DNA from: Oopsacas minuta
Taxonomy: Eukaryota > Animalia > Porifera
Length of the DNA: 64,000 nt
Direction: 5' to 3'
NCBI GenBank assembly: GCA_024704765.1
Contig: JAKMXF010000088.1
Coordinates: 248,001 to 312,000, forward strand
Position numbers and translations under genes: made by a program. The notes under the pieces were generated by a model that was given only the letters and a program-made list of their open reading frames with translations, was not told the origin of the DNA and ran no database searches. This document shows positions 1 through 60,497 of the stretch, in pieces; position 1 is the stretch's first letter; each line of letters starts with the position of its first letter.

Positions 1-229
1 TATGTTTTATAAGTTAATATACCTTTTAACTTATAAAACAGATCAATAAATTCAGAGCATTAAAGTGGCACTAGTAATTGGAGGCAAATGTTAAATCTAT
101 ATTATTAAACTCAATTATTGTTTGTTTGTCTACTTTGTATTATAATAATAGTGGAAGATGATCTGTGTATATAATATATGGAATAACATATCATTCTGTT
201 GACGATATAGGAAATAGTAAACAGATACA

Positions 230-410
230 TTGGGGTAATCGAGTATGCTGATTCCGATTTTCACACTTTCGAATTAATCATATGTAAATCTAGTTGTTGT
301 GTTTATTGTATAAAGTAAACAAATAGTTTTAAAATATACGTAGAGACTTGCTCTTAACAGATACAATGGGGTAACAGAGTAAGCTGAATCCGCATTTTCA
401 AGATTCTCAT
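230..410. repeat. Representative of an abundant dispersed repeat family (ggggtaatcgagtatgctgaatccg.. / aaggtgtgaaaatatgattaatcatatg)
   Basis: Degenerate copies in both orientations at about 9370-9640, 11600-11740, 12240-12600, 16530-16570, 17910-17960, 34250-34500, 42850-42990 and 62640-62780. Confidence 0.75.
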
Positions 411-2993: not shown

Positions 2994-4217
2994 ATGGCTA
3001 GTAGATTTGATAACATACAAACTCCTGACCCATTTGATGAAGTTACTAAAAAGATAGAAGATGCATTTGATAAACTGGTTCAGCTTGTACATAGCAGAAA
3101 GATATCTCTATTAACTAAGCTCAGTGATTATCGGATTGAGTTTGATAATTTAGTAGCGAGTAGAATACAAACTGAGAAAGAGCTTCATTCAATGAAACAA
3201 CAAATTGAAAATGTGACAGCTAATGAATTGAAAAGTATGCAGGACAAGTTTTTGTCTGAAATTGAGGAGAAACTTCATAAACTAACTCTCTCTACTACAT
3301 CTTTTGAATTAGATTTCCAAATCAATTCTCACATTATTGAACAAGGGATTAGCAAGTTAGGTAAAATCATTAAAGTTAGTGAACTGATAGTACCTAATTA
3401 TTCTTTAATGAAGATGCCTGTTGTAGCTGTAGGGAAGAGAGGTAGAAGAAGAGATGAGCTTGATGGACCAAGAAGTATTGCCTATGAAGAAGAATCAGGA
3501 TTAATATTTATATGTGATATGGGTAATGCTCTTGTTAAGATATTCAATTCAGCTGGTGAGTTTGTTAGTGATTTTGGATCTAAGGAGTTATACAAACCAT
3601 GGGGTATTCTTCTTCATGGATCTTATATTTATGTGACTGACGTGAGGAATTGCTCAATTCTTAAATATGAAAGATCTAATTATCAGCTTTTAAAGAGAGT
3701 AGGGAACAAGAGTTCAACTATAAATGAATATAAGTATCCAAGACAACTAGCTAAAGGTCCAGATGGATATCTGTACTATGCACCAGAGGATAGGAACAAT
3801 AGAATATCTGTACTGGATACTGATCTTATTCTCATACGCTATATTCAACATGAAAGAGTTGTTAATCCAGTTGCTGTCAAGTTTACTAAAGACAACATGT
3901 TTGTTTTGAGTAATGAATCAACTGATAGAGTTCATTTGTTCAATATGGATAGAGAATATATTGAATGTATAATCTCACTGGAAGCTGAGAAGATAACATG
4001 GTTCTTTACTATAGATATTATTGGTAACATTCTTATTTCAAACTACACTAATGGTATTATTCTTGTGTACAACAGTTTAGGTGTATTATTACATTCAGTG
4101 GGGAAACAAGGTGATAATAAAGGTGAATTTGATAATCTTACCGGTATATGTACTACAAGAAGTGGAAGGTTGATAATAGCGTCAAGTAACGAGAATTATG
4201 GCCTACAAATTTTCTAG
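2994..4217 (+). CDS. Coiled-coil + NHL-repeat beta-propeller protein (TRIM71-like C-terminus, no RING/B-box seen)
   Basis: 407-aa ATG ORF; helical heptad-rich N-terminus, then NHL repeats (GPRSIAYEE..IFICDMGNALVKIF, KPWGI..IYVTD, YPRQLA, GEFDNLTGIC). Confidence 0.85.
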   Translation: MASRFDNIQTPDPFDEVTKKIEDAFDKLVQLVHSRKISLLTKLSDYRIEFDNLVASRIQTEKELHSMKQQIENVTANELKSMQDKFLSEIEEKLHKLTLSTTSFELDFQINSHIIEQGISKLGKIIKVSELIVPNYSLMKMPVVAVGKRGRRRDELDGPRSIAYEEESGLIFICDMGNALVKIFNSAGEFVSDFGSKELYKPWGILLHGSYIYVTDVRNCSILKYERSNYQLLKRVGNKSSTINEYKYPRQLAKGPDGYLYYAPEDRNNRISVLDTDLILIRYIQHERVVNPVAVKFTKDNMFVLSNESTDRVHLFNMDREYIECIISLEAEKITWFFTIDIIGNILISNYTNGIILVYNSLGVLLHSVGKQGDNKGEFDNLTGICTTRSGRLIIASSNENYGLQIF

Positions 4218-7131: not shown

Positions 7132-9006
7132 TTACACCTGTGAAGATACATTAGCATCTTTCAAGGTTTCTACTTCTGATTCTGGAAGTTGATTCTCAAT
7201 TACCGATTCTGCCTCTTTCATATTGTCTAACTCAGCAATTGTAGGATTATATTCTGGAATATGTTTTTTATGTAACCCTCTGTTAAGATAGAGACAGAAC
7301 AAGATTACTACTATTAACAGGACTAATAATAGGATTAGAACGAAAACTATGACAGCAAACACGACTAAGATAAATTCAGTCTCACCAAAGTTCGAGATTT
7401 GAGGGCTTGTAGTGATGAATTCACAGTCACTATTGTCTGAAGTGGAGATGTTGTATCCGTCAAAACAGGAACAATAAAATGAACCGATTGTGTTTGTACA
7501 ATCCTGTGGACAACCTCCATTGTTTACCCCACACTCATTTACCTCATTACAAATACTATTATTGTATTTAACGAATCCCGCGGCACAATCACAAGTGTAT
7601 GAACCAAGTGTGTTAGTGCAGTAGCCTTCACATACTACACTACTCTCTTCACACTCATTCACGTCATAGCAGAAAGTTTCATTGAGATTAACGAATCCCT
7701 CATCACAGTCACATGTGTATGAACCAAGTGTGTTAGTGCAGTTACCTTGACATGTAATACTACTGTCTTCACACTCATCTATGTCTGAGCATACGAAACT
7801 ACTATTATTGTATAAGGCACGTTCTGGTGGATAAGTACAATTACAACCAGTCTCTGTATCAACTCTATACCAATTATAACCCTGACAGACTATTGAATGG
7901 TCGAAACACTGATAATTAGGGTTAGCACAGTTCACATAGAGGCTGGGATCCTTGACCTGGAGGTCTGGGTTTCCTGGACAAAAATTGTATGAGTCTAGTT
8001 CTATTTCGACATTATATACGTCTTCTAGTATGTAGATCCATTCTGTTTCACAGGTGCAATCGAATGCAATGTATTCAAAAGACAAGTAACTTAATTGTGG
8101 AAATTGTTCAAATATTTCTGGACTCAAAAGTGCTGGATTATAATTGTCGAGGTGGATGTTTTCAATACTTTTGGCTAGTGTAAGGGTTGATAGTGGAAAT
8201 GATGGATTAAGCCTCAGACGAACATCTTCTAATGCATCCAAATCAATGAAAGTGTATTCTCCAACCGTAGTTATGTCATTATTGGAAAGATAAATTTTCT
8301 CCAATTCATGTAAACCATCAAATATACAGTCATATAACTCATGGATTTCATTGTTATCTAAATTCAATCGTCTTAACTTGTATGTCCCATTAAATGAATC
8401 TGACATTAATTTTGTTATGCCTCCGGACTCCCAATACAACACCTCCAATTTATCCAACCCCCCGACTAAAGTCCGATCAATGACACGACTTGACTCTTCT
8501 CTTATAAACGAGCTATGGACTTCAATGTCTATGAGATGTATATTTTGTGAGAAAAATGGCATCAAATTCGATCCTAAAATATCAGCCTCGAAGTACTCCA
8601 AGTTCGGGAAATACGTAAAGAAGTCGTTATGATTAATAAACACTTCATAATCATAAAAAACTATTTGAGTCACGTTATAATTAATCGTGGAAGTTTCAAC
8701 AAAGACGGGTTCATAGAATTGATTTTCTATTTCCAAAGTTTCTATATTACTAGGAATATTTATATTCAACGTAGCACCAGCACCTCCCACCAGTATTTCA
8801 ATATCAAGATAGTAATAACTCCCCTGAGAACATTCATAGATTTTTTCCTGTATTGCTTCTGTATCTTGCCCGCGAACTTCACAGTCTAGCTCATCACCGT
8901 CCTCAAAGCATGTCACTATTGTATTCCCACATTCACCACTGCCAAAAACAACTGAATGTGTGAAAAAGAATAAGAATATGATAAGTTCCTTTCTTGTTGC
9001 TTTCAT
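7132..9006 (-). CDS. Type I membrane receptor: signal peptide, LRRs, LRRCT, 3 calcium-binding EGF repeats, TM, short tail without TIR
   Basis: 624 aa; LRR motifs LRRLNLDNNEI, LEKIYLSNNDI; LRRCT IAFDCTCETEW; cbEGF DIDEC/DVNEC/EVNEC..CTNTxGS; TM FILVVFAVIVFVLILLLVLLIVVILFCLYL. Confidence 0.88.
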   Translation of the reverse strand: MKATRKELIIFLFFFTHSVVFGSGECGNTIVTCFEDGDELDCEVRGQDTEAIQEKIYECSQGSYYYLDIEILVGGAGATLNINIPSNIETLEIENQFYEPVFVETSTINYNVTQIVFYDYEVFINHNDFFTYFPNLEYFEADILGSNLMPFFSQNIHLIDIEVHSSFIREESSRVIDRTLVGGLDKLEVLYWESGGITKLMSDSFNGTYKLRRLNLDNNEIHELYDCIFDGLHELEKIYLSNNDITTVGEYTFIDLDALEDVRLRLNPSFPLSTLTLAKSIENIHLDNYNPALLSPEIFEQFPQLSYLSFEYIAFDCTCETEWIYILEDVYNVEIELDSYNFCPGNPDLQVKDPSLYVNCANPNYQCFDHSIVCQGYNWYRVDTETGCNCTYPPERALYNNSSFVCSDIDECEDSSITCQGNCTNTLGSYTCDCDEGFVNLNETFCYDVNECEESSVVCEGYCTNTLGSYTCDCAAGFVKYNNSICNEVNECGVNNGGCPQDCTNTIGSFYCSCFDGYNISTSDNSDCEFITTSPQISNFGETEFILVVFAVIVFVLILLLVLLIVVILFCLYLNRGLHKKHIPEYNPTIAELDNMKEAESVIENQLPESEVETLKDANVSSQV

Positions 9007-44738: not shown

Positions 44739-45845
44739 ATGGCAGTTGAATTTCCTCCAAAATTGGAAGCGAATTTAGATTTGACAACTGATCAGAATTC
44801 TCTTACATTCCAAGAAGCTAGAGATTCCATCAAAGCACAATTTGTTATTTATCGTAACTTATTGGATAAAAAGGAGTTGGACCTATTATCCGAAATTGAT
44901 CAGCTGGAGGAGAATAACAAACCAGAATTAATTCATGTTAAACATGATCTGACCAGACTCCATGGGGTAATTGGTACTTTAGGTGAATCATTAGGAACTG
45001 ACACTTTGAAATTATTCCTGGAAGAGCAAAAAACAGTTTGGCAAAAGCAAATTTTAGATTTTCAGAGATCAGAAAAACTTTTATCCCGCGTGATCTTGAA
45101 GAATTCTGACTTTGAGAATTTTGTACAGAATGTGAATCAAATTGTTCCTTTTTGGTCAAAAGCTAAATTTAGAATAGAATTGGAACCTATTTTGGAAGTA
45201 AAACCAAAGATTGGAGAAGATTGGTATATCGTATCTAAAAAGTGGTTTTCAGATTTCACAGATTCGATAAATCTAACCGCTCCAAAACCTAATGACAGCT
45301 GGGAGTTCCCAGAGAGAATTCCAATTGACCATTCTAGAATCTATGCAAATGGACTATTGTGTGATGTTAACGATTGTAAGGTGTTACATTCCAAAGCTTG
45401 GAAGTTGTTGCTAGAGTTTAATGGTCTCTCGCTTAATACTATCCCAATAAAAAGACGGTCCTATCCACATTCAATTACTCATATTCGGGTCCCAATAAGC
45501 CCGACCATACACAAATGTACCTTAGGACATAATAGTAAAAACAGCAAATTTAGTATTGAATGTGAGATAAGAACATTTCCATACGAAACATATAATAATA
45601 TTCTAAAGAAATTGTCACCATTCTGTTCATTATTTACAACTCATATACCTATACTGTATTCTATTGGAGGGACATATAATATATCATGTAATCCACCTCA
45701 GTATACTCAGTACAATATTAGCAAGCCTTCTAATCAAGTTCTTGTTCAACCTGCACCTGAATCACCAGTTGGCATAATACCTCAAACACTCTTATTGATT
45801 ATCCCTGACGCTATGGGGGTAAACTATTTTCAAGTTCCCTTATAA
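44739..45845 (+). CDS. Coiled-coil + DUSP-domain protein without a USP catalytic domain
   Basis: 368 aa; helical N-terminus, then DUSP signature GEDWYIVSKKWF..PIDHS..AWKLLLEFNG..PIKR; no Cys-box/His-box. Confidence 0.75.
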   Translation: MAVEFPPKLEANLDLTTDQNSLTFQEARDSIKAQFVIYRNLLDKKELDLLSEIDQLEENNKPELIHVKHDLTRLHGVIGTLGESLGTDTLKLFLEEQKTVWQKQILDFQRSEKLLSRVILKNSDFENFVQNVNQIVPFWSKAKFRIELEPILEVKPKIGEDWYIVSKKWFSDFTDSINLTAPKPNDSWEFPERIPIDHSRIYANGLLCDVNDCKVLHSKAWKLLLEFNGLSLNTIPIKRRSYPHSITHIRVPISPTIHKCTLGHNSKNSKFSIECEIRTFPYETYNNILKKLSPFCSLFTTHIPILYSIGGTYNISCNPPQYTQYNISKPSNQVLVQPAPESPVGIIPQTLLLIIPDAMGVNYFQVPL

Positions 45846-48039: not shown

Positions 48040-48204
48040 CTTATACCAATCAATGTTTATTATCATTTTTGTAAGCGCTTGCTTAACCTGAAACTGGCTG
48101 TGGGCTTTTACTATAAATAGAAAAAATCAATTTTCAGTTTCAATTTCAAATTGACATTCTAGTAACTTTCACTTTCAGTTTCGGTAGCCAGATTGGGGTT
48201 AATT

Positions 48205-49248
48205 ATGCAAGATAGTAATATTGAAGCTGAACTTGTCTTTACACCAAATCTGTATGTTGGCATTAGACAGATGAAAGAGAATCTCTTCAATGAGTTAACC
48301 CGTGATGTGACAGATCTGAGAGAGAGAGCATTAATACTAGAAGTTATTTGTCAGTTTTGTGAAGATATCCGTTGTGAATTGGATAAATGTAGTCAAGAGT
48401 TATTTTCTATTCTAGATCTAGATAATATATATTGGAGGAGAAGACCTAAATACATGAACAAAAGTTTAACTGCATTTGATCAGTTCTTTCATCAACAAAT
48501 ATACACAATATTACCGAAAAATCCAGGAAATCATTGTCTTAACATTTGTATAGTTAATACCTTGGATGGGAATCACCCTTACTTCTACTTAAGACACCCT
48601 TTGCCTGATCTTAAAGTACAACATGAACGAATTGAGCGACTGAAAAAGGACAGATTTATTGTGGGAGAATATTGTTATCTTTTGAATAGAGATTGGTATT
48701 CTAAATGGTTGAATCATGTTAAAACATATAACAGCAATGTATTACAAGATAATTTGAAGGAAATTGGTCCGATTAGCAACGAAATTTCTAATTCAGTTTC
48801 TATACAAGATATTGTATACTGTCAAACGAATTTGTTTATTCAATTATCTGAACCAGTTTGGATATTGTTACTGTCTTGGTATGGATTATCTAACAGATCG
48901 ATTGTTTTCAGAAGACAGATATTATCATGTGAGGATGGTCAGGTAGAACTTGAGAATACATTAATTCACTTACCCTGTTATTCTGATCCAGACACGGATA
49001 GATATGAAGTATTGGGATTTAGATATGAAGAGACAATAGAAAGTGTTTTAAGTAAGATTAGAGTTGTTTTTAGAATTCCAATACAATCACAGTTATTGCT
49101 ATACACACGTCCCAATGAATGGACGGAATGGGTACATATCAGTGGAGAAATTATCTCAGCAAAAGATCTATTCGATAGAGTACAGTTGCTGATTATTAAG
49201 AAAACTGTTAATGATTGGTCTCTTTCCATATCTCCATGCTATCTTTGA
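48205..49248 (+). CDS. DUSP + ubiquitin-like (USP4/11/15-type DU module) protein without a catalytic domain
   Basis: First ATG at 48205; DUSP GEYCYLLNRDWY..GPISN..VWILLLSWYG; UBL-like EETIESVLSKIRVVFRIP..LLLY..QLLIIKK..DWS, then stop. Confidence 0.78.
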   Translation: MQDSNIEAELVFTPNLYVGIRQMKENLFNELTRDVTDLRERALILEVICQFCEDIRCELDKCSQELFSILDLDNIYWRRRPKYMNKSLTAFDQFFHQQIYTILPKNPGNHCLNICIVNTLDGNHPYFYLRHPLPDLKVQHERIERLKKDRFIVGEYCYLLNRDWYSKWLNHVKTYNSNVLQDNLKEIGPISNEISNSVSIQDIVYCQTNLFIQLSEPVWILLLSWYGLSNRSIVFRRQILSCEDGQVELENTLIHLPCYSDPDTDRYEVLGFRYEETIESVLSKIRVVFRIPIQSQLLLYTRPNEWTEWVHISGEIISAKDLFDRVQLLIIKKTVNDWSLSISPCYL

Positions 49249-50439: not shown

Positions 50440-51255
50440 ATGGGAGGAAAACAATCAAATCTGGGAAGGAAATGGCCTTACATAAAGAAGAAATCTCCTG
50501 TGACTACATTCGGGGTGAAAGGAGTTGGGAGAGGGGAATTTAGAGTGAACAGGGGTATCACTATAGATGAAGAACAAAGATTGTATGTAGTAGATAGGAA
50601 CAACCAGAGAATTCAGATATTCACAGATGAAGGTGAATATGTAACTGAAATACACCCAAACTTTAATACAAATTATCCCAATGATATAGCAGTTGGTGAT
50701 GGATGTATATTTGTGAGTAGTGTCCCTAACCTAATATACACATTTCAAGCTACTACAACGAATAATCTAATTAAGACTTATCTTTGGGAGATTAAAACAC
50801 CAAGAGGATTAACAGTAGACACCAATGGAGAATTGTATGTAGCTGATACATACGCTAATAGAGTTGTAGTTTTGAATTTAGAGCTAGAATGTATTCGGAA
50901 AATTGGGGAAGGATCACTTGATCGACCAACAGATGTCAAAATCCTTATGGATATAATATTTGTAGCTGATAACAATACTAGCAATACTATACATCTATTT
51001 TCCAAACTGGGAGATTTGGTGAATAGTTTTCTAAATATCAAAACTAATCCTATTATTCAAGATACATATATATGTTTCGATCTAGAGTATAATTTGATTG
51101 TGTGTTCTGTATTTAACGCATCAATAATGGTATTATCAAGTGAAGGAGTATTGATACATAAAATCAAATTAGAGGATAGTCCAAGAGGGATAGCTGTAAC
51201 AGATAATTTTCGTATTATTTGCTCAAATAACCAGAATAGTATTGTAATATTTTGA
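50440..51255 (+). CDS. Stand-alone NHL-repeat protein with an N-myristoylation-type start
   Basis: 271 aa; starts MGGKQS; NHL repeats GEF..NRGITID..LYVVDRNNQRIQIF, YPNDIAV, TPRGLTVD..LYVADT, RPTDV, SPRGIAV. Confidence 0.85.
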   Translation: MGGKQSNLGRKWPYIKKKSPVTTFGVKGVGRGEFRVNRGITIDEEQRLYVVDRNNQRIQIFTDEGEYVTEIHPNFNTNYPNDIAVGDGCIFVSSVPNLIYTFQATTTNNLIKTYLWEIKTPRGLTVDTNGELYVADTYANRVVVLNLELECIRKIGEGSLDRPTDVKILMDIIFVADNNTSNTIHLFSKLGDLVNSFLNIKTNPIIQDTYICFDLEYNLIVCSVFNASIMVLSSEGVLIHKIKLEDSPRGIAVTDNFRIICSNNQNSIVIF

Positions 51256-51699
51256 TTATCGCATCTTGTATGAGTTGTATTTGTACGAATGTATTATTTA
51301 AATTTTCCATTCTCCAGTATATTTATATTGATACATTTTCCTGTGACGACTGCCGACTACGTATACTTGTCCTGTTTTGAAATGGGTCCTATATTTTTTC
51401 TATATTTATCCGTAGAAGGTGCAGAACCAAATATTGTTTATTAAGTGCCGAAACTTTCAGAGTACAAGAACAAATACAGTAAGGTGTGCGTTAACGATTA
51501 ATTATCTAACACAATTTGCCACATTTGTGCCACTTCTTCACACCTTTTTGACCACTTGCAAATATTTTAGGTAAATATCAATATCATACTTAAAACAGTA
51601 CACTTGTATCAACTTCTTGAACAATAACTAATAATAAATTACTTACGAATCATTATTTACGAGCTATTATTGTTTATAGTCTCAATCCTCAACTAACAG

Positions 51700-54600
51700 A
51701 TGTCTAAATCGGCGGGGAAGTCTAAGAAAACAACTAGATCTGTTTTCGGAAAATTAGCCGCTAAAGTTAAAAGTCCCGATTTTTCTAGTCCTGAGCTAAA
51801 GAGTTCACACAGTGGTGGTGGTAAACTGACATCTTTCACAGGACAGAAGACTTCTCCAGGATGGGGTGGGGGTGCTAACAAAGCTCCTGCTCCTAGAAGC
51901 AAGAAGATGGAAGCTTTTTATGGTCAGGATGAACTTTGGGAAGCGAAAACTGAGCATCTAGATAACTTCAGTTATATGAATGATGATTTAGGAATGTTTG
52001 AATCTGTATCCAATGATTCAAACTTGGAAGGCGTAGACTTGACTATTCCAACGAAAGAATCTAAATTGATGTACAAACAAATGTCAATTGATGTTAACGA
52101 ACAACTACATGATAGTGGTATAAGTACGAATAGAAGGGCTACTCTACTAAATAGAGGTCTGAAGAAATTCGTTCAATCCGTTGCTCCGCCCTCACTTAAT
52201 ATTCCCTATAATCTAGACCTGAATGAGAATGTTCCTGTTAGAGGAGTTGCTATTGTTATTTCATTACACTGGACTATACCTGACATTGAAGGAGAGATTA
52301 AACCACTGAAAGAAGCACTACGAGCATTGAAGTATGACGTCATAGGCACATACGGAGTGAGTAAACAAGATCTCCTTGATATGAAGAAAGATTGGATGAG
52401 GCAATTGCAGTCATTGAAGTATCCGTCTTTTGTTTGTGTTGTTATTGGTTCCAGTGATATAGAACAAAACTTTGTTACTACAGACAATCAACTGTTATCA
52501 CGTGATGAAATTCTACAGGGTTTGGATTCTGGATTCCCACAGTATTTACCGAAATTATTTTTCTTCAATTCACTGCTCCCTCCAACCGCTACGAATATCA
52601 CCAAAGAATTACCAAATAACACATTGTATATGCATACCTATTTCGATACACGTATCTATGGTTCAAAGGCTGTTGTTACTCATCCTTTCTTAGAAACTTT
52701 CTATGACATCATACGTACCAGAGGTAATAAAGACGAATTTCAGGAAATGGTGCGTAGAGCTAAACACGTCTGTTTATCTTCTGTCAACGATTACAAAGCA
52801 TTGAACATACGTCAACACTCCACGCTTCAACGTCCTCTTTTCCTATTGCCTGATAATCTGATCGAAGCAGAAACGAATGTTTTACAGAGCTACTTTTCAT
52901 TGAAACAAGCTTATCCTATGTCAAACACATCGAACCATGGATTAGTTGTCCTCGGACTGATTGAAGATGCTTCCTGGACACAAACAGCTAAATACCAGAA
53001 GTCTACGCGGTCTATTTATAACAACTTAAAGACTACTTTACAGTTCTACAATCTTAAAGTGTCTACATTCGAGTTGCGCAGCAAATTAGATTATAAAAAC
53101 GAGCTTTTGAGGGAAGTACGTAGAAAAAATAATCAATACGATTTGGTTATTATTATACTGCTAGGGAGTAGTACGAATGAAAATCATATCAAGTTTCGTA
53201 CAGGACCAGAGATTCTATTGATCGGTGAAGTATTGGATGATTTGCAAGTTATTGGCCCTGATATCCCCAAACTACTTTTCATATCACAACTACTCCATCT
53301 TGACTCTAGAGAGAATGTGCCATCTCTGTTACGAAATAACAAGATGCAGAGTGAAGAAAAGGCTCCATTTATCCACAATTCGTATGTATTCCATGCTAAG
53401 AATAAAATGACGTCAAATTTAGAAGGAACATTTTTGAGCTCTCTAACTGAAGCTCTTAAGTGTAAATTCCGTAAGTTGGAATTCACGAAAATAGCAAGTT
53501 ACATGCGACTGAATTCTGCGGAAAAGAATTTGCTACCCCACTTTCTAGAAATGAATAATCTAGAAAGTCCTTTGTATCTTCTTCCAGAAGAGCTAAAAAT
53601 ATCAGCTGAGCTACTGTCTCGTGGGGAGGAGTTCGCTTCCCTCTATCAAGAGGCCTTGGACGATGGGTTAGAATTGTTAAGGTTCTATCGACTAATGGTT
53701 GTCGGACCTGAGGGTGTCGGGAAGACCTCCCTTCTCCGTGCTTTGACAGGACAGCCTTTTGAAGCCAACCAGACGAGCACTCCTTTCATTGACAAGTTTG
53801 ACGTGCAGATTCATAAAATCAGCAAAGATTGGAAACAGAATGAAGATCTTGATAGCTATGCTGACAGGCTCTTAGATACGAAGGAACAGATGGCAGTGAA
53901 CTATGTAGTAGGTAAGTTGAAAGAGAATATACGAAAAGAATCAACATCAACTCTAATAGAACCTGACATGTGTCCATTAGACCTGTATGAGTTCTGTATC
54001 GATGATCCTAGTGTTTTCACTACAGAACCTAGCATTCCTATGTCCACTACCAATAACCTTGACAACCAAATCAGTGGTAATGCTGGACTGGCTACCTTAG
54101 ATAGCATTCCATCTTCCTCTAACAGTATCCTAGCTACTCAGGATAGTATGGATGTAACAAAGAGCTTTACACAGGTCTACACTACCCCTATTGTAGAAGG
54201 AGAGAAGCCTGCTATGAATCAGGAATTTGAAATTCCTCCTGACGATATAATACCTGATGAACAGTGTTCTAGGTCAAGTGTTAATAAATCACCTCCACTT
54301 CTTCCTATTGAAAGCGAAGATACCCCTCCTGTCACTTCAGTAGGTGCCGTAGTTCCACCACCATTTCCTGAGGTAAATCCCGCAGTTCTCCCTCCAGTTC
54401 ATTCTGTTAATCCTGCAATTCTTCCTCCCAATCCTTCAACAAAACCAGTAGTTTCCCCTCCTGTTCCTCCTGTAAAAGCAGCAGCTACCACTCTAGCAAT
54501 TTCGGGACTCATTCCACCTCCACCTGCTGACATGCCACCAGAATTCTTACCAAAAATTTCCCATAAGTCAATTGATTCAAACGCAACGCCTAATGATGAC

Positions 54601-57510
54601 GTAATTAAACTCGAGACTCTTGACTTAAAAGAGAACTTAATCGATATTCCAATAAACAAGATATACTCTACACTGAATCAGGACGCTGAATCTAAGAACG
54701 TAGAGCATCCAGATTTCCTAACTGCGTGGGATTTCGCTGGACAGAATTATCTCTATTGCTTCCATTCTCTATTTCTCTCTCCACGAGCTATCTACTTGTT
54801 ACTCATAGATTTAGCTGTTGAAGATTTGAACGCAGATATAAACATCCGCGAGGAACGTAAAGATAGGTTATCTCAAAGAAGTTATGCTGGTGTACCCAAA
54901 ACCTATTTAGAAGCAATCGAATTTTGGTTGAATGCGATCTACTCTGTAGCTCGTATGCCATTGTCTGAGCATTATTCACGTCATTCTAAAGTTGTATTTA
55001 TATTTTCACGAGCTGATAAGTGTGAAGAACCGAAAGCAAGAGCAATCGAACACTTTGAAACGATACAAGATTATATGATAGGTAAGAGTAATGCATTTTC
55101 TATCGTCCATATGAATATAGATGATCCAATTGTTATAAGCTGTAAGCCAGGTAGTCCATATCTCCAGAATATTAACCAAATTAAAGATCTATTGGAAGGT
55201 ATTTCAGATACAGTAGCATTTAGACAGGAAATACCGATTAGGTGGTTAGAGCTAGCAAGAGCTATTCTACATGAGAGAAGCCCATTTATAAGTCATAGAC
55301 GTTTAGAGCTTTTGTGTGAGAAACACGGCTGTACAAAAGATTTTAGCCCTCTCATTTCTCTTTTTCATGATATTGGATTCTTTTTCTACCAGAAAGGGAT
55401 TGTTATACGAGACATACAGACCTTCCTCAACATAATCTATCATGTCATTTCACCTCAATATGGTGATAAGATTGTTGAAAAGGCAAAGGATTTTGATAGA
55501 GCATTTTTAAAGCAAGATTTGCTTGATTGTCAAAACGCAGGTAGAATTACCAATAAACTTCTTAACCATATTCTGTTGTTAGATGATGATATATCTCATG
55601 TAAGAGAAGAAGTAGTACAGTTGTTGCTTACTTATGGAGTTATAATAGATTCACAAGCAGAAACTAGAAACCCATTCTACTATGTGCCTTACCTTATGAC
55701 AGGGAATTTGGAGGAATTATCAGCTGTTGATGATGATATAAATACAGCTTATATATCTGTTGATGATAAATCAAGTCAAACATTCTATCTCTACTTTCCT
55801 GATGGATTTATCCCAGCAGCTGTTTACTTCAGTCTCCTGAGTCAATGTCTTAAATTCAATAAGTTGAAAGGTCAGCCACAACCTCTTCTTGGTTTTGACT
55901 GTGCACGCTTTCAGTTGTCACACGACCATTCTTTCATCCTAGACTTTTGCTCCAATAAATGTTACATTCGTGTGTTATTCAACAGTGCATTGACTCACTC
56001 TTACCATTTAACAGAGCGATTAAATTTCTTACATTTTATACAGACTCACATATCTGAAATACAAGGCAATATCATACCGTGTGGTAACGCAGCTAAGATA
56101 GCTGTTGAGTGTAGATGCAGAGAATTGTATTTAATGAAGAAACTTGTACAACCTTGTGTATTTCTTGATCAACTGCTTTCCACACCCACAGGTTATCGTA
56201 CTTCATGGTGTCATACCTCACAAAAATACGAAGAATGGAATCATCTGTTCATTGATAAGGATTTTTACTATGACATGTTACGAAGGCAGTTTAATAGCGA
56301 TGAGTTGGCCAAATTCATTTTCGACAATATTGATGTGTTTGAGGAACATTTGAATATATTGACACTGTCGAGACAGTTGTATTTCGGTGGCCTATTCACA
56401 GCTATTGATCTGTCAATGTTGCTGTCAAAAGAGAAGAATGAAATGACAGCTGAAGGCATTCTTGCTCAGCTGCTGCATCAATCGAATAATTGGGCTCTCA
56501 GGTTCTATCTGTGTTTACAGAGAGAGACTTCACATTCTGGTCATTTGTTCTTAGTTCAATTCGTTGATTCGTTTCTGTTTCAAAAGCATTTAGAACAACA
56601 ACAGCAACAACAACAACTGGCAGCAGAAAATTCTGGTGAGGGAAAGCGAAAACGTTTCGCAGACATAAGGGGGAGTATTATGCCATCAGAAGATGAGTTT
56701 GACAGATATAAAATGAACTGTAATCCACACGGTATAGCAATGATTGTGAATATTGAAACATTTAAAGACGATGTCTCTATGACTAGGAAAGGCTCTCATC
56801 ACGATTTTATCCAACTCCGTGAGACTTTTGAGCAGCTACAGTATGTTGTATTAGGTTTTGAAGATTTGACGAAACGCCAGTTTAAGAAACAGCTTTTGAA
56901 TGTACGAAAAATGGACCATCATAAATATGATTCGTTCATATGTGTAATCATGTCCCATGGTGATGAGAAAGATAACGTTATAACTCATGACAAACTAAAG
57001 ATTAGTAAACAGGAAATACTCAATGAGTTTAAACCTGAGTACTGTCCTGGGTTGATTAAGAAGCCGAAAATATTTATTTTTCAAGCATGCAGAGGATCGA
57101 AAAATGAATTTGAGCCAGCAATTGGAGATGATGTTGATGGTGTAGAACACACAGAACCAGATCTCACAAACGAAGGAGAAGACGACTTGATTCTGACTGA
57201 TGAACTATTCTTGACCCGAGAAGATCCTTCAGTCAAACTAATTACCAACTACGACAGATCAATCACAGTCCACCACCAGAGTGATACCTTCATTGGCAAT
57301 TCTACTGTACAAAACTATGTATCATATCGTGATCCATCAAAAGGATCGATGTTCATACAATCTTTCTGTAAAGTTATACAATACACACGATATGAGGAGT
57401 TCCAACATATCATGAATGAAGTTCGTCGACGTGTATCAATGCTTTCCAAGAAGTATGTACAGTGCACTGAGGATATAAACCATCTTACTGCTAAATTGTA
57501 TTTCTTCTAA
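51700..57510 (+). CDS. ROCO-caspase fusion: two degenerate caspase domains, Roc, COR, death-fold-like segment, intact caspase (1,936 aa)
   Basis: P-loop GPEGVGKTS (53704), WDFAGQ (54727), EAIEFWLNAI, COR start EIPIRWLELAR (55228); caspase SHG (56953) and QACRG (57082), ending LYFF. The N-terminal repeats have caspase-fold framework motifs but no catalytic residues. Confidence 0.9.
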   Translation: MSKSAGKSKKTTRSVFGKLAAKVKSPDFSSPELKSSHSGGGKLTSFTGQKTSPGWGGGANKAPAPRSKKMEAFYGQDELWEAKTEHLDNFSYMNDDLGMFESVSNDSNLEGVDLTIPTKESKLMYKQMSIDVNEQLHDSGISTNRRATLLNRGLKKFVQSVAPPSLNIPYNLDLNENVPVRGVAIVISLHWTIPDIEGEIKPLKEALRALKYDVIGTYGVSKQDLLDMKKDWMRQLQSLKYPSFVCVVIGSSDIEQNFVTTDNQLLSRDEILQGLDSGFPQYLPKLFFFNSLLPPTATNITKELPNNTLYMHTYFDTRIYGSKAVVTHPFLETFYDIIRTRGNKDEFQEMVRRAKHVCLSSVNDYKALNIRQHSTLQRPLFLLPDNLIEAETNVLQSYFSLKQAYPMSNTSNHGLVVLGLIEDASWTQTAKYQKSTRSIYNNLKTTLQFYNLKVSTFELRSKLDYKNELLREVRRKNNQYDLVIIILLGSSTNENHIKFRTGPEILLIGEVLDDLQVIGPDIPKLLFISQLLHLDSRENVPSLLRNNKMQSEEKAPFIHNSYVFHAKNKMTSNLEGTFLSSLTEALKCKFRKLEFTKIASYMRLNSAEKNLLPHFLEMNNLESPLYLLPEELKISAELLSRGEEFASLYQEALDDGLELLRFYRLMVVGPEGVGKTSLLRALTGQPFEANQTSTPFIDKFDVQIHKISKDWKQNEDLDSYADRLLDTKEQMAVNYVVGKLKENIRKESTSTLIEPDMCPLDLYEFCIDDPSVFTTEPSIPMSTTNNLDNQISGNAGLATLDSIPSSSNSILATQDSMDVTKSFTQVYTTPIVEGEKPAMNQEFEIPPDDIIPDEQCSRSSVNKSPPLLPIESEDTPPVTSVGAVVPPPFPEVNPAVLPPVHSVNPAILPPNPSTKPVVSPPVPPVKAAATTLAISGLIPPPPADMPPEFLPKISHKSIDSNATPNDDVIKLETLDLKENLIDIPINKIYSTLNQDAESKNVEHPDFLTAWDFAGQNYLYCFHSLFLSPRAIYLLLIDLAVEDLNADINIREERKDRLSQRSYAGVPKTYLEAIEFWLNAIYSVARMPLSEHYSRHSKVVFIFSRADKCEEPKARAIEHFETIQDYMIGKSNAFSIVHMNIDDPIVISCKPGSPYLQNINQIKDLLEGISDTVAFRQEIPIRWLELARAILHERSPFISHRRLELLCEKHGCTKDFSPLISLFHDIGFFFYQKGIVIRDIQTFLNIIYHVISPQYGDKIVEKAKDFDRAFLKQDLLDCQNAGRITNKLLNHILLLDDDISHVREEVVQLLLTYGVIIDSQAETRNPFYYVPYLMTGNLEELSAVDDDINTAYISVDDKSSQTFYLYFPDGFIPAAVYFSLLSQCLKFNKLKGQPQPLLGFDCARFQLSHDHSFILDFCSNKCYIRVLFNSALTHSYHLTERLNFLHFIQTHISEIQGNIIPCGNAAKIAVECRCRELYLMKKLVQPCVFLDQLLSTPTGYRTSWCHTSQKYEEWNHLFIDKDFYYDMLRRQFNSDELAKFIFDNIDVFEEHLNILTLSRQLYFGGLFTAIDLSMLLSKEKNEMTAEGILAQLLHQSNNWALRFYLCLQRETSHSGHLFLVQFVDSFLFQKHLEQQQQQQQLAAENSGEGKRKRFADIRGSIMPSEDEFDRYKMNCNPHGIAMIVNIETFKDDVSMTRKGSHHDFIQLRETFEQLQYVVLGFEDLTKRQFKKQLLNVRKMDHHKYDSFICVIMSHGDEKDNVITHDKLKISKQEILNEFKPEYCPGLIKKPKIFIFQACRGSKNEFEPAIGDDVDGVEHTEPDLTNEGEDDLILTDELFLTREDPSVKLITNYDRSITVHHQSDTFIGNSTVQNYVSYRDPSKGSMFIQSFCKVIQYTRYEEFQHIMNEVRRRVSMLSKKYVQCTEDINHLTAKLYFF

Positions 57511-58181: not shown

Positions 58182-60497
58182 TTACACATCCAATTGTGGG
58201 TTCTCATAGAAATTCCCAGTACAATTTGCATCATCTAACTCCCCATACACGATAGTAGGGAAAGCAGGTTGTTCTTCATTCCGTACCAATGTATTACCAG
58301 TAGACACGTATTCGTAGAATGGATTTAGACTCTCCACTTTGTCATCTCTACCTTTACCTGGTATTTTGTGTGGATTAGGTATATCATCATCCATGGGAGA
58401 CATTTCAACGTATGTAGCTTCATTGAGTTTGTTTGTATAGGGCAATTGTTGTGAAGTAGATGTGTAATGATGTACAACTTCTCCAGGACAATTATTCGAA
58501 CTAGTAACATCTGCAGATTTTTTCTGTTTAAAACAGATGCATAAAATCAAACAGATTATCGATTGGATTACCAACAACAAAATGAGTACAATTATGATAC
58601 AAATAGTAGCGATTGATGTGCTCGGGTTTGATAAAATGGAATCAAACATTTCAAGTGGAAACTCAGTAGTTTGAACATTCACTGACTGGCAATGATGGAA
58701 ATCAGGAGCTGTAAAATTGAATCCTTCGTAACATGAGCAGAAATAGTTACCTATAGTGTTGTAACATATCTGGTCGCAACCTGCATTCGCCACACTACAC
58801 TCGTCAATGTCAATACAACTAATATTGCTAATCTGTGAAAACCCAGGCCAGCAATAGCAGTTGTAGCTGCCAATGTTATTTTCACAATACCCATTGCATG
58901 TTATTCCAGGCTCCTCACATTCGTTGACGTCACTACAATGTGTAAAATTCTCTAATGCATATCCGGGGATGCAAGAACAGGAATAAGAGCCTATCGAGTT
59001 CTCACAATTCTGTTCACATTCTCCATTATCTTGCTGACATTCATTAATATCAACGCATTGTGAGAAATCTACCCAATCAAACCCGGAGTAGCAAGAGCAT
59101 TCGTAAGAGCCTATCGAGTTCTCACAATTCTGTTGACAGCCTCCATTGTCTATCTCGCATTCATTAATGTCGATGCATTTCGTACAAGTTTCTGACATTT
59201 GCAGGCCTAAATTACATCCACATCCAGACAGATCATCTGTTATGCTTACAGTAGAATTCTGACAGTGTTGCTCTACTACACATTCCCCTGTTGCTATCAT
59301 TCTGTGATCTTCTGGACAGCAACAGAATTGTGATAGATAACTGTTCTGACAAACTTGATTGTATGGACACACTATTGAATTGTTGAAACACTCAAACTCT
59401 ACCAAAGGACTACAACTACTGTATGTTACGGGTAAACTAGCATTATTACCATTCAATCCAGCAGGAGACGAACAAATAGCATCTTGTATTACTATCCCAT
59501 ACATAGATACGAAAGAGAGCCATTGTAGTTCGCAGTCACATGTAAAAGGATTATTGGTTAGTTCTAAGTACGTGAGGCTATTTAATTGTTGGAATGGAAA
59601 TGGATTCAATGTTGTATAGCCATTATTTCTCAAGAACAGAATTCTCAACATGTTTAACGTTCTTAAAACGTTCACTGGAAAGTATTGGTTCTCATCTACA
59701 ATCAAAAGCGTAAGATTATCCAGTCCATAGAATGAATCCGGAGAAGCAGTTGTAATAGTATTATTAGCTAAAATTAGATTATCCAAGTTGGTTAAGTTCC
59801 CAAAGACGCGAGCAGGCAAATGTTGAATTTGGTTATCTTCTAAATTTAATGATGTTAACTCACTCATTCCGTTGAAAGCTTCTTGTTCGATGGATATTAT
59901 TCCTGAATTCGTCAACCACAAACGGCTCATAGAACTGAATGCTTCTGTAAAAGACTCATTCAATGCGAATTCTTGTCCAATATCAATCGATATCGATAGA
60001 GATATTAATTTATTACTGAAAGATGGCAAGGAGTTGAAGATTAGCTTCACTTTGCTAGTAACAGTAGTGACATTAGGAAAAAACTCGAAAAAGTTTGGTT
60101 GAAGTAGGATAAAATCATCATCCAAAAACCATATATAATTTACTGAAGGGTGGGATTTGACTGAGCTAACCTGGAAAATGTTACCAGGAAAAGCAAAAAT
60201 GAATAGTATCCTTGTAATGTATGGGCCAATGTCTAACTCTACCGTCAGAGGAACATCGAAAGAAGCGTATTTGTAAATCTGGAGTACTGTTTTATGACTG
60301 TATTCCTCGCTTGTACAATTTCTAATTACATTTCTTATTAATTCTGTATTCTCTCCCTCGAATATATCACACCACCAATAGTCAGTGGGTGTGCTTGAAA
60401 GATCTCCGCAAGATATGATGGGGGTTGAATACGAACAAGTCTCAAGCCTGCAAACCGTAAAGAACCCCAGAAGAACTACTAGATGAAACAAATTCAT
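58182..60497 (-). CDS. Type I membrane receptor: signal peptide, LRRs, LRRCT, EGF array (4 clear cbEGF), TM, Tyr-rich tail without TIR
   Basis: 771 aa; LTSLNLEDNQI, LDNLILANNTI, NPFTCDCELQWL; DINEC/DVNEC/DIDEC repeats; TM IATICIIIVLILLLVIQSIICLILCICF. Confidence 0.9.
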   Translation of the reverse strand: MNLFHLVVLLGFFTVCRLETCSYSTPIISCGDLSSTPTDYWWCDIFEGENTELIRNVIRNCTSEEYSHKTVLQIYKYASFDVPLTVELDIGPYITRILFIFAFPGNIFQVSSVKSHPSVNYIWFLDDDFILLQPNFFEFFPNVTTVTSKVKLIFNSLPSFSNKLISLSISIDIGQEFALNESFTEAFSSMSRLWLTNSGIISIEQEAFNGMSELTSLNLEDNQIQHLPARVFGNLTNLDNLILANNTITTASPDSFYGLDNLTLLIVDENQYFPVNVLRTLNMLRILFLRNNGYTTLNPFPFQQLNSLTYLELTNNPFTCDCELQWLSFVSMYGIVIQDAICSSPAGLNGNNASLPVTYSSCSPLVEFECFNNSIVCPYNQVCQNSYLSQFCCCPEDHRMIATGECVVEQHCQNSTVSITDDLSGCGCNLGLQMSETCTKCIDINECEIDNGGCQQNCENSIGSYECSCYSGFDWVDFSQCVDINECQQDNGECEQNCENSIGSYSCSCIPGYALENFTHCSDVNECEEPGITCNGYCENNIGSYNCYCWPGFSQISNISCIDIDECSVANAGCDQICYNTIGNYFCSCYEGFNFTAPDFHHCQSVNVQTTEFPLEMFDSILSNPSTSIATICIIIVLILLLVIQSIICLILCICFKQKKSADVTSSNNCPGEVVHHYTSTSQQLPYTNKLNEATYVEMSPMDDDIPNPHKIPGKGRDDKVESLNPFYEYVSTGNTLVRNEEQPAFPTIVYGELDDANCTGNFYENPQLDV

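Follow-up and report, generated by a model that had tools for sequence, protein, structure and literature searches.

A 64,000-nucleotide stretch of Oopsacas minuta DNA (assembly GCA_024704765.1, contig JAKMXF010000088.1, positions 248,001 to 312,000 of the forward strand; hereafter the window, whose numbering is used throughout) contains a glass-sponge gene that is real, expressed, and well conserved and that encodes one multidomain protein, here termed the ROCO-caspase. The gene appears in the open reading frame (ORF) listing of the window as a single uninterrupted ORF (51700..57510, + strand, 1936 residues). The order of the encoded parts, as assigned from sequence profiles and predicted folds, is an unrecognized N-terminal region, two dead caspase-fold domains, a Roc GTPase with a predicted-disordered insert, COR-A and COR-B, a CARD, and an active caspase. 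By analogy with known death platforms, the chain may be read as a self-contained sensor, switch, and effector with an NLR- or apoptosome-like layout in which a Roc-COR GTPase would replace the STAND ATPase, a reading that we judge to be evenly balanced between right and wrong. Whatever lies past the architecture and the expression of the gene is what we infer. The features of the gene and protein are listed here, with the evidence used for each.

50927..51570, + strand: stretch that contains the 5'-untranslated region (5'UTR) exon and reaches back into the final part of the NHL ORF upstream (50440-51255); contig of sequencing run X4 ending at the splice donor
51571..51679, + strand: 5'UTR intron of 109 nucleotides (nt), GT..AG; X4 joint 51567->51677, "skips 109, GT..AG (cut +3)"
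51694..51696, + strand: in-frame TAA in exon 2, one codon upstream of the ATG at 51700; read from the sequence
51700..52224, + strand: N-terminal region, residues 1-175, domain unrecognizable; Pfam without match
52225..52914, + strand: pseudo-caspase domain 1, residues 176-405; hhalign, Pfam, AlphaFold2 (AF2) model with VIA structure comparison, motif columns
52915..53634, + strand: pseudo-caspase domain 2, residues 406-645; hhalign, AF2 with VIA, motif columns
53668..55233, + strand: Roc GTPase, residues 657-1178, with intact G1-G5, interrupted between strand beta-2 and DxxG by the insert listed next; Pfam, family profile, fold
53947..54699, + strand: proline-rich Roc insert, residues ~750-1000, ~250-290 residues, predicted disordered; predicted local distance difference test (pLDDT), lengths in relatives
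55234..56259, + strand: COR (COR-A and COR-B), residues 1179-1520; weak Pfam match, family profile, VIA fold comparison
56263..56634, + strand: CARD, a death-fold helical bundle, residues ~1522-1645; family Pfam matches, profile, AF2
56704..57507, + strand: intact caspase (Peptidase C14A), residues 1669-1936; Pfam, solved relatives, invariant residues

The protein was dissected by aligning its relatives (n = 32), dividing the alignment by region, and testing each region on its own; single-sequence Pfam searches of the N-terminal pieces and the CARD region returned little or nothing, and family profiles and structure prediction were needed there. An initial annotation of the window had described one uninterrupted ORF with Roc and caspase motifs, a COR-like region, and an intact C-terminal caspase, and every motif that it cited was found where it had been placed. 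Those of the Roc domain are G1 GPEGVGKTS (residues 669-677), the switch-I threonine T694 in STPFID, G3 WDFAGQ (1010-1015), G4 SRADK (D1106), and G5 ISCK (S1147). Pfam Roc was matched in two stretches with an E value of 9e-11, above the gathering score, and weak AAA_16-type matches fell on the Roc P-loop. The GxxxxGKT motif, the switch-I threonine, DxxG, the G4 aspartate (xxxD), and the G5 serine (SxK) were invariant in the 32 relatives. When the family Roc-COR profile was compared with the PDB, it matched LRRK2 Roc together with the start of COR-A, as well as the Roco proteins of C. tepidum and M. barkeri. The COR-like region, weak in Pfam (COR-A, E 1e-3), was confirmed by this profile search and by the predicted fold. 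An AF2 model of residues 646-1668 (predicted template modeling score, pTM, 0.66) had Roc-COR tandems as its top Foldseek and VIA matches (LRRK1, LRRK2, CtRoco, and MbRoco2), with VIA Z scores of 25.5 for LRRK1, 25.4 for MbRoco2 (309/323 residues), 25.1 for LRRK2, and 19.4 for CtRoco. COR-B is present, since the COR-only structure 3dpt_B aligned in VIA with model residues 534-875 (278/299 residues, Z 13.6).

The Roc domain is interrupted between strand beta-2 and DxxG by a long conserved helix followed by a proline-rich stretch, where the pLDDT was below 50 (residues 106-334 of the same model). The Roc region ranges from 338 to 631 residues among relatives, the insert varying in both length and sequence. 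The insert is retained in a transcript of the glass sponge Vazella pourtalesii, and no splice joints were seen there in run X4. The stretch 53947-54699 carries abundant PPxP-type proline motifs and short near-repeats, and it diverges strongly from the Vazella ortholog while its flanks are nearly identical.

The C-terminal caspase matched Pfam Peptidase_C14 over residues 1678-1934 with an E value of 6e-50, and the nearest solved structures were caspase-3 (E 7e-33), then caspase-8 and caspase-6. Its motifs include R1696 in TRKGS, H1753 in SHG, C1797 in QACRG, and R1877 in SYRD; these four residues and Q1795 were invariant in all relatives compared (30/30), in agreement with the initial description of the domain as intact. 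The intersubunit linker is ~60 residues long, acidic, and rich in aspartate, and sites within it, such as DDVD-G, are candidates for self-cleavage. Ahead of the caspase, Pfam CARD was matched by 14 of the 31 aligned family members, the best at 1e-11. The best solved structures for the family CARD profile were all of the Apaf-1 CARD (E 1e-3), followed by the CARDs of ASC, cIAP1, and MDA5, and the AF2 helices of the region had pLDDT values of 84-96.

A CARD immediately before the caspase is the arrangement of caspase-9, caspase-2, and CED-3, and it fits an alternative in which everything ahead of the caspase is one giant prodomain of a conventional initiator. The protein would then be recruited through its CARD to a separate activating platform (Apaf-1-like, NLR-like, or a CARD filament), and Roc-COR would be a constitutive dimer or scaffold, or would control localization as in LRRK2, but would not control the protease. 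In several Roco structures COR-B is known to provide a constitutive interface for dimerization, and the fold is matched here; the proline-rich insert, moreover, resembles a docking region. However, all GTPase motifs are invariant in ~30 diverged paralogs, so a working nucleotide cycle is favored over a passive scaffold, and the fusion is retained in nearly all members, the relative P0032 alone lacking the CARD-caspase. We consider a conventional initiator of this kind unlikely.

The layout first proposed, Roc-COR joined to a caspase, was right about the single chain, but it missed the CARD, the Roc insert, and two dead caspases, and the CARD and dead-caspase pair make it likely that the mechanism differs from one built on Roc-COR and caspase. 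The profile comparisons for the dead domains were made after removal of six relatives that have NACHT, not a caspase fold, at the N-terminus. Domain 1 (residues 176-405) then aligned with the family's active caspase over nearly the whole domain (hhalign 94.6%, E 7e-8) and also matched Pfam C14 (E 0.0025), and domain 2 (residues 406-645) aligned over nearly the whole domain as well (hhalign 97.8%, E 7e-13). The motif columns lack the catalytic histidine and cysteine in both domains in every family member. An AF2 model of residues 160-660 (window 52177-53679; pLDDT 82, pTM 0.84) matched caspase-7, -3, -8, and -9, CED-3, and the protease-like domain of c-FLIP_L in VIA with Z scores of ~19-21. Ordinary caspases aligned to model residues 9..470 with only ~190 residues aligned, whereas the circularly permuted caspase-2 aligned contiguously to 140..376. 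These alignments indicate crosswise packing in the model, with the large-subunit portion of each dead domain set against the small-subunit portion of the other. The dead pair is thus predicted, from the model, to be a closed, interdigitated, caspase-like pseudo-dimer within a single chain. Preceding it, the region of residues 1-175 varies from 0 to 233 residues across relatives, and low model confidence was confined to residues 160-175.

The co-occurrence of dead and active caspase domains in one chain also invites comparison with FLIP. One or both dead domains could pair with the C-terminal caspase through the normal dimer interface, blocking or activating it as c-FLIP_L does on procaspase-8, with Roc-COR movement making or breaking the contact within one chain. 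The caspase fold of the dead domains and the presence of c-FLIP_L among their structural matches (Z 19.5) are in keeping with such internal control. The AF2 model, however, closes the two dead domains on each other and leaves no free dimer edge, and the NACHT-bearing subfamily works without a dead pair. Provided that the predicted closed pair is right, FLIP-like pairing is the less likely arrangement, and we rate it as quite improbable.

Evidence for the gene itself came from four sequencing runs of one sample that contain the stretch (X1-X4). The kinds of run were unrecorded; X1-X3 act like DNA and X4 acts like RNA. Run X1 was assigned to DNA because its contigs reach 107 kb with full depth throughout, and X4 to RNA because it has a spliced contig and zero depth in the intron. 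Record 11 of X4 (672 nt) spans 50927-51567 and then crosses the splice joint, and the depth in the bin 51588-51641 within the intron was 0 in X4 compared with 166 in the DNA run X1. By sequence, the intron borders are TTTTAG/GTAAAT and TTTATAG/TCTCAAT, and exon 2 begins at 51680. The in-frame TAA at 51694-51696 makes M1 the N-terminus and excludes the in-frame addition of a coding exon from upstream. Overlapping X4 contigs cover the entire ORF with zero joints, and the DNA runs showed no differences from the window. A Trinity transcript of Vazella pourtalesii encodes a full-length ortholog of 1899 residues that is 73% identical end to end. The initial description of a single chain implies one transcript rather than several, and the joint-free X4 coverage, the spliced 5'UTR, and the Vazella transcript agree with this as far as the tools used allow.

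The same data bear on the explanation that there is no working single protein, the ORF being instead a pseudogene, an artifact of chimeric assembly, or a pair of genes mistaken for one. In general, a long ORF does not by itself establish a gene in an animal genome, and the RNA contig joins the upstream NHL gene to the 5'UTR, so contigs can span more than one gene in this compact genome. Against this, the frame stays open for 5.8 kb, the same architecture is found in ~15 clusters, several assemblies, and two named species, the Vazella transcript is full length, the catalytic residues are invariant, and the DNA runs agree with the window. This explanation is already largely refuted, and we regard it as extremely improbable.

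The X4 contig extends from within the NHL ORF (50440-51255) past the NHL stop, reaches the splice donor at 51570, and continues in the exon of the ROCO-caspase; depth falls from ~885 to 313 near 50940. Either the 5'UTR of the ROCO-caspase overlaps the 3' end of the NHL gene or transcription reads through. Bacterial contamination or transfer was considered and rejected on the basis of a G+C content that matches the flanks and is uniform over the region, the spliced 5'UTR, and the animal-type CARD and caspase.

When 1.84 billion representatives were searched exhaustively with a profile of Roc (from G3), COR, CARD, and caspase, ~15 clusters matched over the whole profile. All were from the glass-sponge family, with plain caspases next, and by this measure the full architecture is confined to glass sponges. 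The named relatives are Oopsacas minuta 'Caspase-3' (44% identity) and 'Caspase-3-like' (31% identity). The architecture occurs in several assemblies and two named species, with several paralogs per genome, some of which share a contig. In other glass-sponge assemblies, P0018, P0020, and P0025 lie together on a 577,490-bp contig, P0028 lies with P0039, and P0022 with P0040; such sharing suggests local gene clusters. In one subfamily (P0026-P0031, including P0030, which is the Oopsacas minuta 'Caspase-3-like' protein), a NACHT domain at residues 95-245 takes the place of the first dead caspase, giving the order NACHT, Roc, COR, CARD, and caspase, and hence a chain with two nucleoside triphosphatase (NTPase) domains. 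P0032 (1192 residues, from another assembly) has the dead-caspase pair and Roc-COR but neither CARD nor caspase; it represents either a model that was cut short or a natural paralog with the regulatory parts only. Compared with close orthologs, Roc-COR is the most conserved part (88-92% identity), followed by the caspase (77-85%) and the CARD (74-81%). The dead caspase domains are the least identical (62-75%), so the putative input module evolves fastest.

Roc-COR proteins such as LRRK2 and CtRoco are nucleotide-linked dimerization devices, and CARD-caspases are activated by induced proximity. In the sensor-switch-effector reading given at the outset, the fast-evolving dead-caspase pair would be the input or regulatory module, probably binding a peptide or protein. 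Roc-COR would act as a nucleotide-dependent switch of dimerization and conformation, comparable to LRRK2 and C. tepidum Roco, and its state would set the proximity of two C-terminal CARD-caspase units. Proximity would induce caspase dimerization and then, probably, self-cleavage within the acidic linker, while the CARD could reinforce self-association or bring in further CARD proteins. The likely setting would be cell death or innate defense. Control of caspase activation by guanosine triphosphate (GTP) would be plausible. The reading gains from the family-wide invariance of the GTPase motifs and of the caspase dyad and arginine residues and, by analogy, from two precedents, the Roc-COR-CHAT protease of Runella and the DAPK1 layout in which Roc-COR precedes a death fold. 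We also count in its favor an apparent conflict-gene signature, comprising several paralogs per genome, the NACHT swap, and the variable length of the Roc insert.

Several points weigh against this sensor-switch-effector reading. GTP binding and hydrolysis, dimerization, and protease activity are inferred from motifs and predicted folds. The single-sequence Pfam match to COR-A (residues 1179-1257, E 1e-3 to 2e-4) lies under the gathering score, and the protein's own CARD region had no match to Pfam CARD, so that call rests on the family profile. The Roc insert of ~250-290 residues in the beta2-beta3 region could hamper normal switching. Since GTP drives C. tepidum Roco to monomers, the reading fixes no sign of regulation, and since the CARD has been kept, activation may continue to depend on a CARD platform outside the protein. 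Finally, X4 was taken as RNA solely from its spliced contig and empty intron.

Roc, COR-A, and caspase in the same order within a single predicted protein were also found outside sponges, in a sea anemone, a brachiopod, an annelid, and amphioxus, in proteins that are all unnamed or auto-named. Among the long caspase matches were Exaiptasia KXJ13106.1 ('Caspase-8') and XP_020902336.1 (P0185), the latter with HEPN_DZIP3 and an extra P-loop ahead of Roc, COR, and caspase. Lingula has three such predictions (XP_013407220.1, XP_013412607.1, and XP_013401300.1) and Branchiostoma one (XP_035660786.1), whereas Owenia fusiformis CAH1786849.1 (P0056) has a Bcl-2 domain followed by Roc, COR, and caspase; these five are all annotated as 'uncharacterized'. 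The N-termini of the non-sponge fusions (HEPN_DZIP3 with a P-loop, a Bcl-2 domain, or none) thus differ from that of the sponge protein, and Pfam detected neither a CARD nor a dead-caspase pair in them. The sponge Roc-COR profile covers these fusions and the DAPK1-like proteins with Roc, COR, and a death domain nearly full length and with similar scores, those of the DAPK1-like proteins (hemichordates, molluscs, and Lingula) being 100-120 bits. A FastTree of caspase domains, a quick tree with many long branches and open or weak deep forks, placed the sponge family together (support 98) and scattered the other Roc-COR-caspases among plain caspases. The tree fails to support a single origin of the fusions, and repeated independent fusion is the simpler reading.

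A wider claim is possible, namely that glass sponges and, independently, several other marine invertebrates have an apoptosome-independent route in which an LRRK2-type Roc-COR gates the dimerization of a CARD-caspase in the same chain, with the closed dead-caspase pair as the sensor in sponges. We hold it tentatively, judging it somewhat more apt to fail than to stand.

No description of an animal Roc-COR-caspase was present in the literature searched, which mostly excluded subscription journals and is therefore weak evidence of absence. To that extent the novelty first suggested for the protein stands, but the fusion is already in public protein sets (Oopsacas minuta, Exaiptasia, Lingula, Owenia, and Branchiostoma), and bacterial Roc-COR-CHAT has been studied: the Runella zeae protease was purified and cleaves bacterial gasdermin (bioRxiv 10.1101/2021.06.07.447441). 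In Trichoplax, ROC-COR occurs in proteins together with CARD or TIR (PMC4104024), and sea anemones have proteins with leucine-rich repeats (LRRs), Roc, COR, and TIR (PMC5094078). In a paper on Dysidea NLRs, COR and caspase are among the domains listed for NACHT proteins (PMC12909245), and a paper on amphioxus reports many caspase fusions and mentions Roc in none (PMC2575513). The core fusion of Roc, COR, and caspase is not unique: other invertebrates have it too, and a bacterial analog has been studied. The sponge protein is a variant within the ROCO proteins with swapped effectors and the NTPase-caspase death platforms.

Like the sponge protein, the ROCO proteins (LRRK1 and LRRK2, C. tepidum and M. 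barkeri Roco) have Roc with G1-G5 directly followed by COR-A and COR-B (superposition Z ~25), with an N-terminal interaction module before Roc-COR and an effector after it. The effector is a CARD-caspase in the sponge protein and a kinase in the LRRK-type proteins, and the N-terminal module is a dead-caspase pair rather than LRR, ankyrin, or armadillo repeats; the predicted-disordered Roc insert of ~250-290 residues is also a feature of the sponge protein and unlike the ROCO proteins. DAPK1 and its invertebrate counterparts (ankyrin repeats, Roc, COR, and death domain) share the succession of Roc-COR and a death fold and have a link to cell death. The sponge protein, in contrast to DAPK1, is without the kinase, calmodulin site, and ankyrin repeats (Pfam matched neither kinase nor ankyrin repeats in it), and its death fold is a CARD with a caspase after it. 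In Runella zeae Roc-COR-CHAT, as in the sponge protein, Roc-COR lies N-terminal to a caspase-superfamily cysteine protease for death or defense, but the Runella protease is a CHAT that cuts after leucine, whereas the sponge protease is a classical animal caspase (C14A) with aspartate-binding arginines, and the CARD and dead-caspase pair are not found in the Runella protein. The two fusions are most likely independent.

The apoptosome and the NLR inflammasomes (Apaf-1, CED-4, or NLRC4 with CARD-caspases) have the same logic, from sensor to nucleotide switch to CARD to proximity-activated caspase. Their switch is a STAND ATPase, whereas that of the sponge protein is a Ras-like GTPase with COR, and all of its parts are in one chain; Pfam found neither NB-ARC nor NACHT in this protein, although the sister subfamily P0026-P0031 does have NACHT. 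At the level of the family, a CARD lies N-terminal to the caspase, as in initiator CARD-caspases. The N-terminal domains share with c-FLIP_L and other pseudo-caspases a caspase fold without catalytic histidine and cysteine; they differ from c-FLIP_L in forming a tandem of two whose predicted partners are each other, in having no death effector domains, and in sharing their chain with an active caspase.

The main interest lies in the putative apoptosome-independent gating of a caspase and in a possible model for Roc-COR signaling. For LRRK2, the kinase of Parkinson's disease, it is a matter of continuing debate how the nucleotide state of Roc-COR reaches the effector, and a natural Roc-COR-caspase would offer an all-or-none protease read-out of nucleotide-effector coupling. 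If the proposal is true, caspases in early animals were coupled to a GTPase switch besides STAND ATPases, and this happened more than once, matching a bacterial defense design. The sponge protein would then be the animal equivalent of bacterial Roc-COR-CHAT defense proteases, and it would allow Roc-COR switching to be followed in a natural system through a simple protease signal. The pair of dead caspases, for which a single-chain caspase dimer is predicted, would be a new use of the caspase fold and possibly a sensor.

The neighboring ORFs in the window are of animal type and mainly intronless, encoding NHL propellers, proteins with LRRs and calcium-binding epidermal growth factor (EGF) domains, RhoGAP proteins, and DUSP-domain proteins. 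No gasdermin gene lies beside the ROCO-caspase gene, its neighbors being NHL and LRR-EGF genes. NHL-repeat ORFs were found at 2994-4217 and 50440-51255, two similar DUSP-domain ORFs lie in tandem at 44739-45845 and 48193-49248 (+ strand), and two similar ORFs for LRRs and calcium-binding EGF domains are at 7132-9006 and 58182-60497 (- strand). The region is one of locally duplicated genes, mostly without introns.

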